Assembly: GCA_951406725.2 (NCBI GenBank)
Contig: OX597815.1
Span: 35,670,001 to 35,732,000, forward strand
Origin: Octopus vulgaris
Taxonomy: Eukaryota
Direction: 5' to 3'
Length of the DNA: 62,000 nt
The translations under genes were made by a program, and so were the position numbers. Positions 9,967 to 58,853 of this stretch are shown piece by piece. The notes below the pieces were generated by a model. That model saw nothing but the letters and a program-made list of their open reading frames with translations. It searched no databases and had not been told where the DNA came from. Each line of letters opens with the position of its first letter. Position 1 is the first letter of the stretch.

Positions 9967-10240
9967 TCAAACATAACATAGAAAGCGAAATAAATCAAAA
10001 ACAGTTCGCCAGGTTAATACGTATGATATCAAACTTTGTAAATGTTTAATATCATTGCATGAAATATTATTGAAACGATTAGTTATGTTTCCAAAAGAAG
10101 GATCGACGTTTTTACAATTATGTCTTTTACTGAAATCCAACAAATATTTTTTTAGCCAGAAAAATTGACTGGCGGAGCCTTTAGGACGAAAGAACTTTAC
10201 ACTAATATCAGAGTGTTCAGCTGAAACATAATTGCCACTC
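9967..10240 (-). pseudogene. Possible DNA-transposon-derived coding remnant
   Basis: SDISVKFFRPKGSASQFFW resembles a C-terminal segment I recall from animal transposon-associated ORFs. Recognition from memory only. Confidence 0.25.
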
Positions 10241-14431: not shown

Positions 14432-14903
<472 letters not shown>

Positions 14904-15582: not shown

Positions 15583-18500
15583 ATACTTTGATACTTTGAT
15601 ACTTTGATAGGTTTCGGCCATTATTGGCCCAGGCCATGTCTAACTTAATAGCACCACCTGGTGAAGTCTTTCAAGTCAGAATTTGGGCACTATGGCCCAC
15701 TCAAGTAGAGAGTTATTGTTTGCAGAGACATATCCGGGTGTAGGGGGTTTATCCGGGATTTCTTGAAAGAATCTGTCCAAAGACTTCTTGAACCCTATAG
15801 GGTCAGTTTCTGTTTTAATGTGTTTTGGTGTAATGTTAAAGAGAGCGGGGCCAATTGAGGTGAAATAATTGTGCCGTATTGTTGTTATGAGATGAGAGTG
15901 CGATTTTTGTTTTGGGCGGATGGCACGGGGCCCAAGCCTTGGATGTACCTTAAAGGTGATGCCAACATCATTTGGGCAATGCTGATGGAATATTTTCCAC
16001 ATCATGCAGATGATGTAGCGCTCACGACGACGTTGGAGAGAATAGAGTTTTAGCTTTTCTAGTCGACCCCAATAGTCGAGGCCTGTCATGCCATCTATCT
16101 TTTTTGTGATTGCCCTTTGAGGTGCTTCAACTTTTATGATACCTTGTATTGTGTGGGGAGACCACAGTGGACAACAGTATTCAAGGTGGGGTCGGACAAA
16201 AGTGGAGAAGAGAAGGATAATGGTGTGGATATCTCTCGACTGGAAAGTTCTGAGAATCCAGGAACACATTCTGCGGGCCATGTCAACTTTGGTGTTTATA
16301 TGAGTGGCCCAGCTTACGTTGTTGTCCACAATTACTCCCAAGTCTCTGATGTTGTTGGACGCCGCGAGAGTTTCACCTGAAGGAAGGGAGTATGGGAGTT
16401 TCAGGGCATCCTCTTTTCCAAAGTGGATTAGCTCAAATTTATCCTCGTTCAGCAGCATATTGTTTTTTTCTGCCCATTGGATAACAGCCAGTAGATCTGA
16501 CTGAAGGCATGTCCGGTCACCCGCCTCATTTATGACCTTCTGTAGCTTGGAGTCATCTGCAAAGATTTTTATGTTGCTGTGCTTGATGATGTCATTAATG
16601 TCATTAATGTAAATGATGAAAAGAAGTGGGCCCAGCACAGTGCCTTGCGGAACGCCACTACTGACTTTGGCTGGGCTTGATTTTACCCCTTCAACTACAA
16701 CATGTTGAGATCTGTCTGTCAGGAAACACTTAATCCATTTCAGTAACTTTCCAGAGACACCAATGTTGGATAGTTTTTTCAATAGGATCTTGTGATCGAC
16801 CCTGTCGAAGGCCTTACTGAAATCAAGGTAGATGACATCGGTGTTGGAGCCCTCTCCCAAAGCTCTCAAAATGTCCTCAAAGTGATGCAGGAGCTGCGTT
16901 AGGCAGTCCCTTCCATTACGGAACCCATGTTGGTTGGAGATCAGCCGTCTGTTGCTTTCCAGAAATTGGGTTATTCGAGATCTCACCACCCTCTCAAATA
17001 CCTTGATGATATGAGAGGTGAGTGAGATCGGACGGTAATTCACTGCAAGGGACTTGTTTCCCTTTTTGAAAACTGGGACAACAGACTGGGACAGAAGGTT
17101 TTTTGGAATATAGCCAGCATCCAGTGAGTTTCTCCACAGATTAGCAAGGGGAGATGCAAGTTGGTGTCGACACACCTTCAGGACACAAGCAGGGAACCTA
17201 TCGGGGCCTACTGCTGAATTGTGTTTTATTTCGTTTATCGCCGCTAAGACATCAGGGGCACTAAATGTTATGTCCGATATAGTGTGTTGGGGGTTGACAT
17301 CACTGATACAGCCCAGATCGGCCATATCAGGATTGCTGAAAACAGAGCAGTATTGTTTCTGCAGTATCTCGGCCATGGATTTGGCATTATCTTGGAGAGT
17401 GCCAGTTTCGTCAATTAGAGGGCCTACAGTGGAGACAGTGACCCTGCGTTTCCTCGCAAATGAAAAGAACACTTTGGGGTTGAGTTTGATTTTTTCAATG
17501 GCCCACTTCTCCTCAGCTGATCTTTGGTTATTGATGAGGGTCTTCATGCATTGTTGGAGGTTATATTTTTTGGATTCAAGCAGTGCGATAGCCGTCGAAT
17601 GTGTGTGCTGCTGTTGGCAGTACTTTAGTTTGTTAATTTTTTTGTTTGTTCTTTTTATTTTTCTGATAATGGTTTTTCTGTTTTGGGGGATTCTGCACTT
17701 TTTGTTCACAGGTCTTGGTGGGGAGTGTTTTGCACATATGTCTGTGACGGTGTCTACAAAGATCTGCCAAGATGTTTTATGGTTGGTGGAGATGTGTGTA
17801 TGTGTAAAGGACCAGTCAACATTTGATAGCTCGTTCCTGATTGCATCCCAGTTGGCTTTATGGAGATCCATGTTGTCAAATGGGTGGGCTGGAGGAAGGT
17901 CACTAGGATTAGCTTTCGGCTGGTGGAATTTCATGTTACAGAGAACCATGTCATGGTCTGAAAGAAGGGTTTTTTCCACTGTAACGTTATGTATAGTGTT
18001 AGTGTGGTTACTAAACACTAGGTCCAAAATGTTCTGATGTCTTGTTGGTGCAAGGACAAGTTGGGACAAGAAAAACTCATTCGTAAAGTCGAAAAGTGAC
18101 TCTGCTGCTTCTTTGTCAGCGGTTGAGGCGGGAGTGCTTGGTTTCAAACAGTTTGTAGTCCAGTCAACACAGGGTAGATTGAAGTCTCCCATCATGAGTA
18201 TGTTGCTAGAATGGCACTGTTGAATAAAGCACTTAATGCTGTTGAGGCATTCTTTAAAGCACAGTATGGGTGTTTGGGGCGGCCTATAGAGCCCAATTAC
18301 TGTCAGGTCATTGGCTTTGTTGTGCACGGTGACTGATTCACAGTAGCCGTTGGAGAATATACTATTTCCATCTGCCGTAAATGAATCATGCAGGAAAATG
18401 GCAGTTCCACCCTTCCTCCTGCCGATACGATCCGCGCGGATGGTTGTGAAATTCTTCACTCTCACTTCGGCTTCCAAGTGGGAGTTGTCAAGGTGGGTCT

Positions 18501-18905
18501 CAGTGAGAATGAAGAAAGGGATGTGGTGTGAATGGTTACCAACCCAGTCTTCAATGAATTGGACCTTCCATTTTTGTGCATTGATGGAAGGGCTGACACC
18601 TTGTGCATTGAGTAGGAATGTGGAGGTTAGTGTAGTGGCTGGTTTTGACTGTTGCAGGGGGCTTGGATTTTGTGTGTGTGTTAGTGGCAGCAATGTGGGG
18701 AATTGGTGCACTGGGGTAATAGCATAGGATGGTGTTGAGTGATGGCTAGAATGTTTTTGTGTATCTCTTTTGCCATGTTCAACATGGCTAAAAAGAATTT
18801 TCCTGCTTAGGGAGCAGTTTTTGGCTGGAGGTGTGGTTGCACTGTTGGATAGGGTTGTAGTTTCCACTTTTGTTGTTGTTGTTTTTGTGTCTTCCTGAAA
18901 AGACA
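15583..18905 (-). mobile_element. Young 5'-truncated CR1/L2-group LINE in a (TA)n tract
   Basis: Uninterrupted ORF2, short 3' UTR and (ATCAAAGT)3 tail (plus-strand ATACTTTG x3 at 15583-15606). Both ends abut (TA)n. Confidence 0.95.
15676..18900 (-). CDS. LINE ORF2p: APE endonuclease + reverse transcriptase, no internal stops
   Basis: APE motifs LNAQG, TETHL, GLYRPP, MGDFN, ILDLVF, LSDH. RT motifs [39 protein letters not shown]...W.P. The 'M' start in the ORF track lies inside the microsatellite. Confidence 0.93.
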
Positions 18906-19045
18906 CATATATATATACATATATATACATATACATATAAATATATATATATATACATACATATACATATATATACATATATATATATATATATATTGTA
19001 TACATATATATATATGTATATATATTATATATATATATATATATG

Positions 19046-21920: not shown

Positions 21921-22062
21921 TGACGTCAATTTGCGTTGGAGGTGCGGCTTCTTAATAAAAACGGAGGGGTGGAGCTTAGCCATATACGGCTGAAGTGGGA
22001 AATTAAACTGAAATGAGATCAGACAGCTATATAAGCTATCACGGCGTTACGAAACTTTATTC
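21921..22062 (+). promoter_or_regulatory. Candidate cAMP-responsive core promoter: CRE, CArG-like box, TATA, Inr
   Basis: TGACGTCA 21921-21928. CCATATACGG 21980-21989 (one mismatch to CC(A/T)6GG). TATATAAG 22028-22035. Inr-like TTATTC with its A at 22059, 31 nt after the TATA start. No ATG between 22059 and the ORF ATG. Confidence 0.65.
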
Positions 22063-22306
22063 TGAAACTTTGACACTCACCAACGAAGTACACAGTGAAA
22101 TAGTGAAATATCTGAAGTGAGAAACACTCGACTTATAAATTCAAATCGAGGAACTTTTTAAAACTAAACTAAACGAAAGAAGGTACAGTGAAATATTTAT
22201 TTGAACTTTCATCTAATTTCATACAGACTTCGCTCAGCAATATTGCATAATATCGTCGCTGCCCTGTGAATTTTCTTACCAAACAAATTATTTCTATTTC
22301 ATCAAC

Positions 22307-22933
22307 ATGCTTGATAACGAAGTATATTTGAAATACGGACCCTACCGTCGCATTCGCAGAAATGCTTTGGCCAATATAATGGAAGGGTTAAATCAAGAAG
22401 CCGTTAACTGGCTGTCGAAAAATATTGCACATCAGTCCAATTCGGTTGACCATCGATGTGAGAAATATACTGATGATGAAAGTAACGTTAGTGGTGATGA
22501 AGGCGACGATGAAAATGAGAATGATGATGACGACGACGATGACGATGCCGGAGGCGTTGAAACCGTCGAAGAAAAAAAAGATGGGAAATATCTGGCTATA
22601 GATGAAGAGAAATCCGTGTTAAATCAGGAAAATAATGAAGGCATTACCTGCCAGAACGATTCTGAATTAAACAAGGCGGATTGTTTCAGACGTCTGAGTT
22701 CACCTATGGAATGTCGATTCCAGTCGTCATTTGCGGCGATCCGGCGGAATGCTTTACACAATTTATTGGAAACATTAACACCAGCCGAAATCTCAACACT
22801 TGGCAAGTTGTATCAGTTGCAACATTCTGTGAAGGACTTAACTTTAGAACAAGAGCGATTCGATCACTTGGTGACACCTGTTCAATACCCATACATTGAG
22901 ACATATTTCGACAAATATTTAACCCAAGTATGA
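22307..22933 (+). CDS. Intronless 208-aa acidic protein with two PKI-like pseudosubstrate motifs (candidate tandem PKA inhibitor)
   Basis: Non-repeat ORF with CAACATG start context. Internal repeat IRRNAL.N..E.L (R17-L21 and R146-L150), Asp/Glu linker, RRLS, NES-like L168-L180, C-terminal TQV. That it is a real CDS is better supported than its function. Confidence 0.8.
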   Translation: MLDNEVYLKYGPYRRIRRNALANIMEGLNQEAVNWLSKNIAHQSNSVDHRCEKYTDDESNVSGDEGDDENENDDDDDDDDAGGVETVEEKKDGKYLAIDEEKSVLNQENNEGITCQNDSELNKADCFRRLSSPMECRFQSSFAAIRRNALHNLLETLTPAEISTLGKLYQLQHSVKDLTLEQERFDHLVTPVQYPYIETYFDKYLTQV

Positions 22934-23526
22934 TTGAAGATATTGCAACAAACGGAAGAGAAAATAAAATCATTTTAAATGTTTTAAAATGCCGAGAAAA
23001 AAAAACTGAAGCATGCGTTTCTATGAAAATTCCTTATCGGTCAAAATTTCTGAAATGAGCAGAAAGAAGAAAGAAATTATACCAAGTAGGGCGAAATGAG
23101 ATAGAACAGGATTTTGTCCATAGAAACAAAGCAACGAACAAACCTTTTTCACTAAAATCTCTGCTCATAAAAAGCAGACGACCGATTGAATGGGCTTACA
23201 GAAAATATGTATGGTGAGCAGAGATTGTGCATATGTTATGCATTTTGTGTTTTCTCAATTAGCATGCAGTTTTGTTTTGATTAATTTATATATTTTCTGC
23301 GTGCGAAATATTTGATGACTAACAATTTGTTAACGAGAAATAATGGATAAGAAGCATAAAATGTTTCGAAGTAAACTCTATATTGTTCAAAAGGAAAAAA
23401 GAAAAAAAAAACGAACAAAGAAAAGAAAATGGAAGAAAAAAGATCGACTAACCCGTATTGAATGAGAGACGAAAGAATTTCTTTTTGAATTTTTTTTTAA
23501 CTGGAATGCTTACATAATTCGTTCGC

Positions 23527-27883: not shown

Positions 27884-28298
27884 GGCGCAGGAGTGGCTGT
27901 GTGGTAAGTAGCTTGCTAACCAACCACATGGTTCCGGGTTCAGTCCCACTGCGTGGCATCTTGGGCAAGTGTCTTCTGCTATAGCCCCGGGCCGACCAAA
28001 GCCTTGTGAGTGGATTTGGTAGACGGAAACTGAAAGAAGCCTGTCGTATATATGTATATATATATATGTGTGTGTGTATGTGTTTGTGTGTCTGTGTTTG
28101 TCCCCCTAGCATTGCTTGACAACCGATGCTGGAGTGTTTACGTCCCCGTTACTTAGCGGTTCGGCAAAAGATACCGATAGAGTAAGTACTGGGCTTACAA
28201 AGAATAAGTCCTGGGGTCGATTTGCTCGACTAAAAGGCGGTGCTCCAGCATGGCCGCAGTCAAATGACTGAAACAAGTAAAAGAGTAAAAGAGTAAAG
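27884..28298 (+). mobile_element. SINE family A reference copy (tRNA head, internal microsatellite, TAAAAGAG-type tail)
   Basis: A-box-like GAGTGGCTGTGTGG, B-box GGTTCAGTCCC, internal (TA)n(TG)n, tail AAGTAAAAGAGTAAAAGAGTAAA. Confidence 0.93.
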
Positions 28299-33569: not shown

Positions 33570-33737
33570 TATATATATGCATATATACGACGGGTTTCTT
33601 TGAGCTTACGTCTACCTAATCCACTCACAAGGCTTTGGTCGGCCCGAGGCTATAGTAGAAGACACTTGCCCAAGGTGTCACGCAGTGGGACTGAACCCGG
33701 AACCATGTGGTTGGTATGCAAGCTACTTACCACACAG

Positions 33738-34697: not shown

Positions 34698-34892
34698 GTA
34701 TATATACATATACATACATATACAGGCGTAGGACTGGCTGTGGCTGTGTGGTAAGTAGCTTCCATACCAACCACATGATTCCGTGTTCAGTCCCACTGCG
34801 TGGTATGTTGGGCAAGTGTCTTCTACTATAGCCTCGGGCCGACCAAAGCCTTGCGAGTGGATTTGGTAGACGGAAACTGAAAGAAGCCCGTC

Positions 34893-34893
<1 letters not shown>
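34301..34893 (+). mobile_element. Two SINE A copies (34301-34637 lacking its 3' end; 34725-34893 5' half)
   Basis: Family-A heads. Both terminate in (TA)n. Confidence 0.88.
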
Positions 34894-34928
<35 letters not shown>

Positions 34929-43740: not shown

Positions 43741-44595
43741 CAAGGTCTGACCAACAAGTATCCGGACTGTTGCTGTAGTAACGACGCTAAAGCACGGAGT
43801 GTGAAACGGCTTGGCATAGATTGACCTTGAACTCTGCTGTACATGAGCATTAAGTTTTAACGCCCTAGCTCACTTCTGCTGTTTGCAGCAATGCTTGGAA
43901 GGAACGTGTGTAACGTGTGATCATCGCATTGACCATGACAGAGAAAGCTGAGCAGAGAATCTGCATCAAATTTTACCAAAAGCTTGGCGATACCGGCTCA
44001 GAGGACTAGGCAAAATTTTCAAAAAGTTTTCATTGTTCTCAACACAATCAAGGAGATCTTGTGCAACTGAAACCCGAGTGTCTTTTTGGGCAGCTGAAAG
44101 CAGTTTTGGCACAAATATCACAGACATGCGTCTCATACCCAAATCTTCAGTGATAATGGACTGGACCGAACCGTAACTAATCTGCATATCTTCTGATAAC
44201 ACACGGATGGTGATTCGACGATTTCCCTTCACAGCTGCATGCACATCTGCGATATTTTTGTCTGTTCTGCTGGTTGCGGGTCTTCCAGAACGTTCATCAA
44301 TATCGACATTTTTTTCGGCCATCTTCAAAACGTCTGAATCACTCGTACATTTGTGTACGGTTCATACACTTCCCTCCATACACTTTCTGCAAGTTTGAGC
44401 AGGCCTCTGAGCAGGTATTGCCATGAAAGCTCTCTCTGTCATAGTCAATGCGACGATCACACGCTACACACCTTCCTTCCAAGTATTGAACATGCACAGC
44501 AGAGTTCAAGGTTAATCTGTGCCAAGTGATTTCAATCTGCGTACTTTAGCTTCGTTACTATGGCAACAGTCTGGATACTTATTGATCAGGTCTCA
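43741..44595. mobile_element. Mariner-derived element made of two inverted 5' ends
   Basis: Left arm: TIR + MTEKAEQRICIKFYQKLG. Right arm (minus): TIR + HTH region ...DERSGRPATS...RRITIRVL...FVPKLL. TA after 44595. No DDD domain. Confidence 0.88.
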
Positions 44596-52270: not shown

Positions 52271-52328
<58 letters not shown>

Positions 52329-52490
52329 CGACGAGCTTCTTTCAGTTTCCGTCTACCAAATCCACTCACAAGGCTTTGGTCGGTACAAGGCTATAGTAGA
52401 AGACACTTGCCCAAGGTGCTACGCAGTGGGACTGAACCCGGAACCATATGGTTGGTAAGGTAGCTACTTACCACACAGCCACGTGCCTAT
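52018..52490 (-). mobile_element. SINE family A, full length
   Basis: Family-A consensus. Confidence 0.9.
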
Positions 52491-56391: not shown

Positions 56392-57560
56392 ATAGTTACT
56401 TTGTGGTTAATACCTTGGACCAATCTATAACGGACTTGCTATTGCCCTTTATCCGTAAATCTAATTCCCTATCTAACTTGTTTAGAATAGAATCTAAGAT
56501 ACTCTTACTAATAATTCCAATTTCCAGCTTTGCTGGGTGAATTAGTCTGCATTTGTGGTTTCTACTAAAATTGGCTTTGTGGTCCATTAGGGTAATAAAG
56601 GGCAGACGTAGGGGAAAGTATTCGATCCTATCACTAACTTTAAGGTTGGTAGCGATTTCGATATTCATCTCTTTATATCAGTTAGTACATACATACATAT
56701 ATACATACATACATACATACATACATACATACATACATACATACATACATACATACATACAAACATACATACAAACATACATGCATGCATGCATACATAC
56801 ATACAAACATACATACAAACATGCATACATACATACATACGTACAAACATACAAACATACATACAAACATACATGCATACATACATACATACATACATAC
56901 ATACATACATACATACATACGTACGTACGTACGTACATACATACATACATACATACATACGTACATACGTACATACAAACATACATACATACATACATAC
57001 ATGCATGCATACATACATACATACATACATACATACATACATACATACATACATACATACATACGTACATACGTACATACAAACATACATACATACATAC
57101 ATACATGCATGCATACATACATACATACATACATACATACATACATACGTCCGTACGTACGTACATACATACATACATACATACATACATACAAACATAC
57201 ATACATACATACATACATACATACATACATACATACATACATACATACGTACGTACGTACATACATACATACATACATACATACATACATACATACATAC
57301 ATACATACATACATACATACATACATACATACATACATACATACATACATACATACATACATACATACATACATACATACATACATACATACATACATAC
57401 ATACATACATACATACATACATACATACATACATACGTACATACATACATAAGTTAGTATTTGCTTTTTTATAAGTGTCTGTAATGTTAGAAAGTAGTCG
57501 TTTGTAAAGATTTTTTTCTACAGCATGGAGGTCTTTTGTTTTGTGGGGCTTCACGAAAAT
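56392..57560 (-). mobile_element. Penelope-like RT fragment interrupted by a ~765-bp (CATA)n tract
   Basis: NLYKRLLSNITDTYKKANTNL, then the tract, then ...PFITLMDHKANFSRNHKCRLIHPAKLEIGIISKSILD, resembling the PLE RT 'ITLKDHK.NF.....CRLINP.KSEIG.ISK' block. Confidence 0.8.
56686..57450. repeat. Long imperfect (CATA)n microsatellite
   Basis: Direct inspection. Source of the 200-300 aa HTYI/MYVC ORFs. Confidence 0.97.
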
Positions 57561-58451: not shown

Positions 58452-58853
58452 TCTTTTACTTGTTTCAGTCATTTGACTGCGGCCATGCTGGAGCACCGCC
58501 TTTAATCGAGAAACTCGACCCCGGGACTTATTCTTTTGAAAGCCCAGTACTTATTCTATCGGTCTCTTTTGCCGAACCGCTAAGTAACGGGGACATAAAC
58601 ACACCAGCATCGGTTGTCAAGCAATGCTAGGGGGACAAACACAGACACACAAACACACACACGCATATATATATATATACATATATACGACGGGCTTCTT
58701 TCAGTTTCCGTTTACCAAATCCACTCACAAGGCTTTGGTCGGCCCGAGGCTATAGTAGAAGACACTTGCTCAAGGTGCCACGCAGTGGGACTGAACCCGG
58801 AACCATGTGGTTGGTAAACAAGCTACTTACCACACAACCACTCCTGCGCCTAT
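58447..58853 (-). mobile_element. SINE family A, full length, short internal microsatellite
   Basis: Near-consensus copy. Confidence 0.92.

Follow-up and report, generated by a model that had tools for sequence, protein, structure and literature searches.

The 62,000-nucleotide stretch of Octopus vulgaris DNA analysed here (contig OX597815.1, positions 35,670,001 to 35,732,000; hereafter the window) carries on its + strand, at 22307..22933, an open reading frame (ORF) that runs from ATG to TGA and encodes a protein of 208 amino acids, followed by the stop codon. The protein (isoelectric point ~4.5, ~24 kDa, net charge -22) contains two copies of the sequence RRNAL, which is the kind of core that the PKI proteins present as a decoy substrate to the cyclic AMP (cAMP)-dependent protein kinase, PKA. 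Because an intronless, transcribed gene encodes two conserved copies of the PKI decoy substrate, its product is probably a new, two-headed inhibitor of PKA.

A TATA box, CTATATAA, was read directly at 22027..22034 (+), ~280 nt 5' of the ATG, and marks a putative promoter. It is kept at the matching position in one orthologous locus (L003) and in that of Argonauta (L001), and the start context TCAACATGCTT is kept in two other species, Argonauta among them. An orthologous transcript is represented by contig L002, a Logan assembly contig of SRR3401912, which is described as an octopus meta-transcriptome (PMC11662614). The alignment of L002 with the window is colinear over 1416 columns at 81.6% identity, without gaps of intron size, and its 5' end lies ~40 nt downstream of the TATA box. 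Since this RNA-derived contig is colinear with window positions 22081-23441, the ortholog is transcribed and its mRNA is intronless; the same interval, 22081..23441 (+), is the inferred minimum extent of the transcript in the window, comprising the 5' untranslated region (~230 nt), the coding sequence and the 3' untranslated region (at least 500 nt). The coding region of Argonauta is also a single uninterrupted exon, on a 32.7-Mb contig, and across the ortholog loci the coding sequence is better conserved (89-91.5% identity) than its flanks (77-87%). The ORF at 22307-22933 is a real, expressed, single-exon gene. The original prediction had been staked on the existence of a transcript and of orthologs, and both were found, the former as the octopus RNA contig L002 and the latter in four other octopods. 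A scan of all six frames of the whole 62 kb for RRNA[LIMV] returned two matches only, both of them in this ORF.

The two cores are embedded in two modules. Module 1, EVYLKYGPYRRIRRNALANIMEGLN (residues 5-29; 22319..22393, +), holds the core of site 1, R17-L21 (22355..22369, +), with A20 at the phospho-acceptor position (P0), R17 and R18 at P-3 and P-2, R14 at P-6 and L21 at P+1; it has aromatic residues at P-13, P-10 and P-7, those at P-13 (Y7) and P-10 being tyrosines. Module 2, FQSSFAAIRRNALHNLLETLT (residues 138-158; 22718..22780, +), holds the core of site 2, R146-L150 (22742..22756, +), with A149 at P0, R146 and R147 at P-3 and P-2, F138 at P-11, F142 at P-7 and L150 at P+1. The RRNA of site 1 is invariant in 11 of 11 family members, with Leu or Met at P+1, and the motif at site 2 is conserved through the family. 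Both copies of RRNAL had been predicted, and they were confirmed at residues 17-21 and 146-150 (nucleotide starts 22355 and 22742), where the translation matches; the earlier placing of R14 at P-6 of site 1, of F138 at P-11 of site 2 and of HNLL directly after site 2 also holds. An acidic, low-complexity linker (residues 51-124; 22457..22678, +), with 29 D/E, 6 K and 0 R and thus a net charge of -23, lies between the modules.

The internal repeat is longer than RRNAL itself. A local alignment of YRRIRRNALANIMEGLNQEAVNWLSK with FAAIRRNALHNLLETLTPAEISTLGK extends over 26 residues with a BLOSUM62 score of 52, compared to 21.4±3.8 (maximum 43) in 2000 shuffles, none of which reached 52, and the N block of the family aligns with its C block at an hhalign probability of 93% (P 2.8e-7). 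Two AlphaFold2 runs, with alignments of 5 and 10 sequences, gave mean predicted local distance difference test (pLDDT) scores of 41.8 and 43.4 and predicted template modelling (pTM) scores of 0.24 and 0.19, which is to say no fold. Helix-turn-helix-like segments were placed at 12-26/30-43 and 143-155/159-168 (pLDDT at most 66) and helices at 3-10 and 133-136/143-155 (pLDDT below 60), the first model having instead a strand at 5-8. The protein is thereby predicted to be disordered, with a modest helical propensity only at the modules, and the linker, modelled at a pLDDT of 30-37, is as acidic and probably as disordered as had been proposed. Such a picture would fit a disordered ligand of the PKI type and, equally, any helical binding motif.

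Among 5.8 billion proteins, a word-indexed search returned four relatives of the window protein: an ortholog from Octopus bimaculoides, A0A0L8HRC2 ('Uncharacterized protein'), at 94% identity; two octopod proteins from Logan assemblies, at 84% and 85%; and one, annotated as hypothetical, from Argonauta hians, at 64%. A profile built from the last 84 residues and run exhaustively with HMMER over 1.84 billion representatives had seven matches, of which P0007 (236 amino acids), P0010/P0011 (230 amino acids) and P0008 are true relatives. The remaining three, P0005, P0006 and P0009, were rejected, being long, internally repetitive proteins that match through low-complexity repeats. A region search with P0011 led to a second O. 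bimaculoides protein, A0A0L8HSK0 (P0019, 251 amino acids), and to one further Logan relative. No relatives beyond cephalopod-type sequences were detected in the word-indexed and HMMER searches.

These proteins are of two paralogous types. Type A, to which the window gene belongs, has the acidic linker and a tail ending in YPYIETYFDKYLTQV; type B, of 230-251 amino acids, has a Ser-rich linker and a tail ending in FHECKA, and its members include A0A0L8HSK0, P0018, P0011, P0016 and P0007 (locus L005). Both types are present in octopus and in a more distant assembly, ERZ21867824; from their divergence, this assembly and the runs carrying P0011 may come from a non-octopod coleoid, and are here called squid-type. 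A tblastn search of the 62-kb window gave no match to the type B paralog. P0008 represents only the C-terminal portion of a type A ortholog at L006 9835-10405 (assembly ERZ21867824), the N-terminal portion of which, MLDNEVTVFQTSYIRVRRNALGNILEGL..., lies just upstream in another frame; the two frames are split by a one-base shift in a run of C near 10018-10021, which is either a (long-read) assembly error or the mark of a pseudogene. P0011 itself was seen on 109 contigs from many sequencing runs, and the Logan proteins P0010, P0012, P0013 and P0014 read beyond its stop with the insertion of a W (HECKA-W...); these extensions are probably gene-caller artefacts, in which TGA is read as Trp, and not longer isoforms.

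Both sites are present in every member of the family. RRNA is invariant at the two sites in 11 sequences and is followed by [LM]-x-[ND]-[IL]-hydrophobic. Site 1 has the pattern R-[RK]-x-R-R-N-A-[LM]-x-[ND]-I-hydrophobic-[ED], from which only the L006 ortholog departs, by an Ile at P-6; site 2 is RRNALH[DN]LLETLT, invariant in both paralogs, the window protein having the variant RRNALHNLL. Across the two types each site resembles its counterpart, site 1 that of the other type and site 2 likewise, and as like sites match in this way, the two-site architecture, an internal duplication, is older than the duplication that gave rise to the paralogs. The ratio of non-synonymous to synonymous substitution (dN/dS), calculated for each region by the method of Nei and Gojobori, is 0.07-0.17 for residues 1-50 and 0.03-0.07 for residues 125-208 in comparison to Argonauta, the latter region giving higher and noisy values between close species; for the linker, in which the orthologs also differ by indels, it is 0.39-0.58. 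The proposal that the RRNAL blocks are kept under purifying selection as the linker drifts is borne out by these values, and the only strongly constrained parts of the protein are the two PKI-type modules and the short C-terminal tail.

The pseudosubstrate core of PKI reads R-R-N-A-[I/L/V], with Ala at the phospho-acceptor position, and this is what is found at residues 17-21 and 146-150 of the window protein. A human PKI-alpha query retrieved 100%-identical proteins of the PKI family PF02827 (210 matches in all). Among the 120 vertebrate PKI-alpha clusters listed, which carry RRNAL, RRNAI or RRNAV cores, RRNALHDIL is the commonest nine-residue form (62/120), followed by RRNAIHDIL (49), and site 2 of the two-site family, RRNALH[DN]LL, differs from RRNALHDIL by one or two conservative changes. 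When the family was compared by hhalign to a set of 12 vertebrate PKI-alpha sequences, S141-T158 aligned with residues 14-31 of PKI-alpha at a probability of 88% (P 2.8e-6); the C block alone gave a probability of 91% (P 9.4e-7) and the N block, aligned from Met1 over 41 columns, one of 74% (P 2.9e-5). The observed scores of 26.8 and 35.8 compare to 8.5±1.8 and 9.1±2.0 (maximum 15-16) in column-shuffle controls.

The most independent support for a likeness to PKI is the scan of family members against all 24,736 Pfam models, in which PF02827 matches more members than any other family does (8 of 10) and is the top match in seven of the eight relatives that were scanned individually (15.5-20.7 bits, E 5e-4 to 0.02). 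The PKI match of P0007 covers site 1 and the segment upstream of it (residues 10-31 against profile positions 6-27), and that of P0002 covers site 2 (residues 137-157 against 10-30). Module 1 also occupies the place in the chain that the inhibitory segment has in PKI, its P0 being residue 20 in comparison to 22. The hallmarks by which a 'PKI motif' is defined, namely a P-site that cannot be phosphorylated, Arg at P-2 and P-3 and a hydrophobic residue at P+1, are present at both sites of every member, and site 1 of P0011, P0016 and P0007 has the full set of PKI determinants (Phe at P-11, Arg at P-6, the RR pair and a hydrophobic P+1). No unrelated family that would explain the repeat emerged from the Pfam, PDB-sequence and HMMER searches. 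Searches of the window protein and of its halves against Pfam and PDB sequences, and of peptides against the PDB, gave nothing significant and only poly-Asp matches.

A number of observations weigh against reading the protein as a PKI. No member of the family reaches the Pfam gathering cut-off for PKI, 25 bits, and in the Pfam scan the window protein and its fragments are not listed for PKI at E<=10, nor is the O. bimaculoides ortholog, both of these proteins having HNLL and not HDLL; our own hidden Markov model (HMM) of PKI-alpha gave scores of only 7-17 bits, and the PDB sequence search found no PKI peptide. With the RRNA core removed, hhalign could not tell the upstream flanks from shuffles in their likeness to PKI (P 0.35 and 0.8) and gave no PKI signal downstream of site 1 (P 0.44); the alignment of LHDLL with IHDIL after site 2 left a weak signal over 5 columns (P 0.007). 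The evidence therefore rests on some nine residues, and since the similarity vanishes outside this nine-residue core, homology with PKI is unproven and convergence is possible. The determinants of affinity are also not fixed. The aromatic residue wanders from P-7 to P-13 among the relatives, lying exactly at P-11 at site 2 of octopodid type A and squid-type B proteins and at site 1 of squid-type A and B proteins; every member except one has Arg at P-6 of site 1, no type A protein has it at site 2; and in the window protein K stands at P-11 of site 1 and A at P-6 of site 2. Furthermore, conservation at site 2 continues through ETLT...L..LY, beyond anything in PKI, and AlphaFold2 renders the cores helical, if with low confidence, where the form in which PKI binds is extended; this would fit a different, helical binding function.

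The PKI-like interpretation of the original prediction stands well for the character of both sites at the level of sequence and is unsupported for membership of the PKI family, for which the Pfam scores are below threshold. Its suggestion of a search with the Pfam PKI HMM had a similarly divided outcome, the match recurring in 8 of 10 members, all below 25 bits, with the window protein itself unlisted. Judged by its sequence, the window protein has at both sites the core hallmarks of the 'PKI motif' as defined for the catalytic subunit of PKA (PKA-C), and it lies outside the PKI family as Pfam delimits it.

Three further features of the window protein accompany the modules. RRLSS (residues 128-132; 22688..22702, +), situated 15 residues upstream of site 2, fits the R-R-x-S consensus for basophilic phospho-acceptors and is a putative phosphorylation site; R129, S131 and S132 are invariant among the octopod orthologs and RRLSS is absent from the type B paralog. 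LQHSVKDLTL (residues 171-180; 22817..22846, +) has a hydrophobic-x3-hydrophobic-x2-hydrophobic-x-hydrophobic pattern, the spacing of which is that of the export signal of PKI-alpha, LALKLAGLDI, and it is on this pattern match a candidate export signal. It is the sole match of this kind in each octopod type A protein, at a constant place, and is unclear in the distant type A ortholog; the type B proteins have no match to the pattern. The C-terminal tail, YPYIETYFDKYLTQV (residues 194-208; 22886..22930, +), is identical in 5/5 octopod sequences and ends in T-Q-V (22922-22930), which resembles a PDZ ligand, though it is only a resemblance; the more distant ortholog ends in HFGKFATHV. All three are type A-specific pattern matches and may add regulation and localisation.

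In the complex of PKA-C with PKI(5-24), the arginines at P-3 and P-2 bind acidic residues of the cleft, the Ala cannot accept a phosphate, the hydrophobic residue at P+1 fills the pocket of the P+1 loop and the large lobe receives an upstream aromatic residue; PKI is, moreover, established as a disordered protein. We favour, with some margin for doubt, a tandem pseudosubstrate inhibitor of PKA with two sites of the PKI type, and propose that it would act in the same manner. As with PKI(5-24), each module would enter a free catalytic subunit of PKA at the substrate cleft, the module's P-3 and P-2 arginines occupying the acidic pockets, its Ala at the phospho-acceptor site precluding phosphate transfer and its Leu filling the P+1 pocket; the upstream aromatic and hydrophobic residues, together with Arg at P-6 in module 1, would add affinity. 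Two such modules on a flexible, acidic tether of ~120 residues could capture two catalytic subunits, or could gain avidity through rebinding. In the octopod type A proteins, the leucine-rich pattern with PKI spacing that follows module 2 could serve, as in PKI, for nuclear export of the complex. We infer PKA binding, inhibition, stoichiometry and export from the sequence. More tentatively, the coleoid family as a whole may be an old one, consisting of two paralogs of single-chain, two-headed inhibitors, each molecule taking up two PKA-C or else one PKA-C and, via the Arg-richer site 1, another basophilic AGC kinase, with type A perhaps adding nuclear export and tuning through RRLS131.

The modules could instead be amphipathic-helix interaction modules, composed of RRNA-hydrophobic-xx-two hydrophobics-E-x-hydrophobic and a second short helix, which bind a partner that is not a kinase or associate with themselves, the likeness to PKI being superficial or due to chance. 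The repeat of 26 residues, and not 5, would be accounted for in this way, as would the invariance in both paralogs of ETLT, L165, L168 and Y169 at site 2, which lie outside the PKI similarity, the helix-turn-helix-like segments of the AlphaFold2 models and the loss of PKI similarity in the flanks when the core is taken away. A hydrophobic spacing of +1, +4, +5, +8 is shared with many helical ligands, among them LxxLL boxes, the alpha-B helix of the kinase-inducible domain (KID) of CREB and helices of the A-kinase anchoring protein (AKAP) type. A generic helix, however, needs neither an invariant Asn at P-1 nor an invariant Ala at P0, and specific readings as an AKAP helix or a CREB-KID-like helix were set aside as they do not explain the invariant R-R-N-A. 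That PKI should be the recurrent match out of 24,736 Pfam models also argues against a mere helix, as does the nine-residue likeness to PKI-alpha at site 2, for which our own composition-based estimate of chance occurrence is ~2e-4 per proteome; no helical-domain family was matched in the Pfam, PDB-sequence and HMMER searches and the pLDDT of the segments does not exceed 66. We regard this explanation as rather unlikely. That the protein serves some other basophilic AGC kinase (cGMP-dependent kinase (PKG), Akt, S6K, RSK or SGK) as its pseudosubstrate or docking protein, instead of or besides PKA, and with sites that may differ in their targets, seems to us less probable again. Site 1 (R-R-x-R-R-x-A) does fit the R-x-R-x-x-S/T type and is basic at P-5, P-3 and P-2 in every member, site 2 is basic at P-5 in type B though not in type A, and PKA and PKG share a preference for R-R-x-S/T-hydrophobic; the specific match, though, is to PKI (RRNA-hydrophobic-H-D-I/L-L), which is selective for PKA.

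It is quite improbable that the conserved residues represent a degron or a cofactor box, that is, a D-box of the anaphase-promoting complex/cyclosome (APC/C; R-x-x-L-x-x-hydrophobic) or an LxxLL box for nuclear receptors, which would make the protein a cell-cycle substrate or inhibitor, or a coregulator. RNALANI and RNALHNL fit R..L..[LIVM] and LH[DN]LL fits LxxLL, the latter at site 2 of all members. Site 1 of octopus type B, however, is RRNAMADIF, in which M replaces the Leu of a D-box, and site 1 never fits LxxLL (LANIM, LANIL, LCNIF, MADIF); the invariant first Arg, Asn and Ala are left unexplained by either pattern, and chance matches to both are very frequent. Least credible, to the point of being negligible, is that the ORF is no functional gene at all and arose by chance or as a decaying retrocopy. 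The locus is intronless with repeats all around and the distant ortholog L006 is broken by a frameshift, but neither in five octopods nor in the paralogs is the ORF disrupted, its dN/dS is well below 1 and differs by region, an RNA contig exists, and the TATA box and start context are conserved, with the coding sequence more so than its flanks.

To our knowledge, no stand-alone proteins other than the PKIs inhibit PKA independently of cAMP, and every PKI so far described is short and has a single site. The statement of the original prediction that a canonical PKI is short with one site is correct for PKI-alpha (76 amino acids, one site). A tandem PKA inhibitor encoded in the window would have in common with vertebrate PKI-alpha/beta/gamma (PF02827) the core of RRNA with a hydrophobic P+1, the N-terminal position of module 1, the Arg at P-6 (site 1), the Phe at P-11 (site 2), disorder and, in octopod type A, a downstream pattern with the spacing of an export signal. 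It differs from them in having 208 amino acids and two sites, in comparison to ~76 and one, and in adding a long acidic linker, a conserved helix-forming sequence after each core and a conserved tail. The inhibitor site of the PKA regulatory subunit RI-alpha (RRGAI) is likewise a pseudosubstrate with Ala at P0 and belongs to a bivalent functional unit, there being two inhibitor sites per R dimer; in contrast, the octopus protein has no cAMP-binding or dimerisation/docking domain and its bivalency would lie within one chain, and the Pfam and PDB-sequence searches found no similarity between RI-alpha and the window protein. Also close are A0A0L8HRC2 and A0A0L8HSK0 of O. bimaculoides, members of this very family in which the two-site layout recurs; they are unannotated, their sources giving neither a Pfam domain nor a name.

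Single motifs of this kind have been described in other contexts. The RRNAL motif of the Epstein-Barr virus (EBV) protein BNLF2b binds and inhibits PKA, and mutation of the motif abolishes both (bioRxiv 10.64898/2026.08.23.746553). In the PKI motif of the Smoothened (SMO) C-tail, the P-site is Ala, Arg occupies P-2 and P-3, P+1 is hydrophobic and an aromatic residue lies upstream, at P-13 (Happ et al., 10.1101/2021.07.05.451193). The octopus sites agree with this at P0, P-2, P-3 and P+1, and RRNAL is exactly the motif of BNLF2b. The definition also places a bulky aromatic residue 11-13 positions upstream and a helix-forming segment N-terminal to the core, for which Y7 (P-13 of site 1), F138 (P-11 of site 2) and the low-confidence AlphaFold2 helices are candidates. 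In the receptor tail and the viral microprotein the motif occurs singly, whereas the octopus pair accounts for most of what is conserved in a stand-alone cellular protein. PKI-like proteins are reported to occur in many invertebrates, for example K09E9.4 of C. elegans (PMC4674680). With these, and with the reports of PKI motifs embedded in other proteins, the kind of protein is already known. A full-text literature search for 'RRNAL' gave only optical character recognition (OCR) noise and rrnaL genes. What is new, among the sequences searched, is a stand-alone, cephalopod-restricted family of two paralogs, unannotated in the databases, in which two PKI-type sites are the main conserved content of a protein predicted to be disordered.

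If the tandem-inhibitor reading is true, two PKI-type sites in one stand-alone protein would be a new architecture with built-in bivalency, possibly with a 1:2 stoichiometry or with avidity. On the more tentative reading of the whole family as two-headed inhibitors, such proteins would act as stoichiometric sinks of PKA-C, and control of the cAMP pathway in this way is not known from any animal. A two-site inhibitor would also show how a nine-residue decoy motif can be kept for a very long time as the remainder of a disordered protein turns over. Cephalopod learning circuits depend on cAMP/PKA, and the family would offer cephalopod neurobiology an endogenous handle on PKA signalling. Families that consist of little but a motif escape the domain databases: neither the ortholog nor the paralog of O. 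bimaculoides is annotated, and in their family PKI turns up solely as a consistent match below threshold.

The surroundings of the gene are repeat-rich animal DNA, made up of microsatellites, copies resembling short interspersed nuclear elements (SINEs) and one ORF of a long interspersed nuclear element (LINE). The gene had been described at the outset as the only non-repeat ORF, which is essentially right, the other ORFs of >=120 amino acids being microsatellite read-throughs or transposon remnants, including the LINE ORF. The latter (15676-19005, -; 1109 amino acids) is apparently intact, lies ~3.3 kb upstream of the gene and contains the domains of an endonuclease (Exo_endo_phos_2, PF03372) and of a reverse transcriptase (RVT_1, E 3e-30). 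A 120-amino-acid ORF at 43966-44328 (-) resembles, by eye, the N-terminal part of a mariner-type transposase and has no Pfam match at E<=0.001. Most of the long ORFs of the window, on both strands, stem from very long compound microsatellites of the (CATA)/(TACA)/(TG)n type, for example at 56553-57560. A SINE-like element of ~114 bp is present in at least 10 copies, such as those at 14737-14850, 27935-28048, 33586-33699, 34793-34895, 52327-52440 and 58686-58799, which are 76-82% identical to copies at the Argonauta locus L001 (16336-16448 and 18515-18607); as copies are found in both, this SINE-like family is common to octopods.

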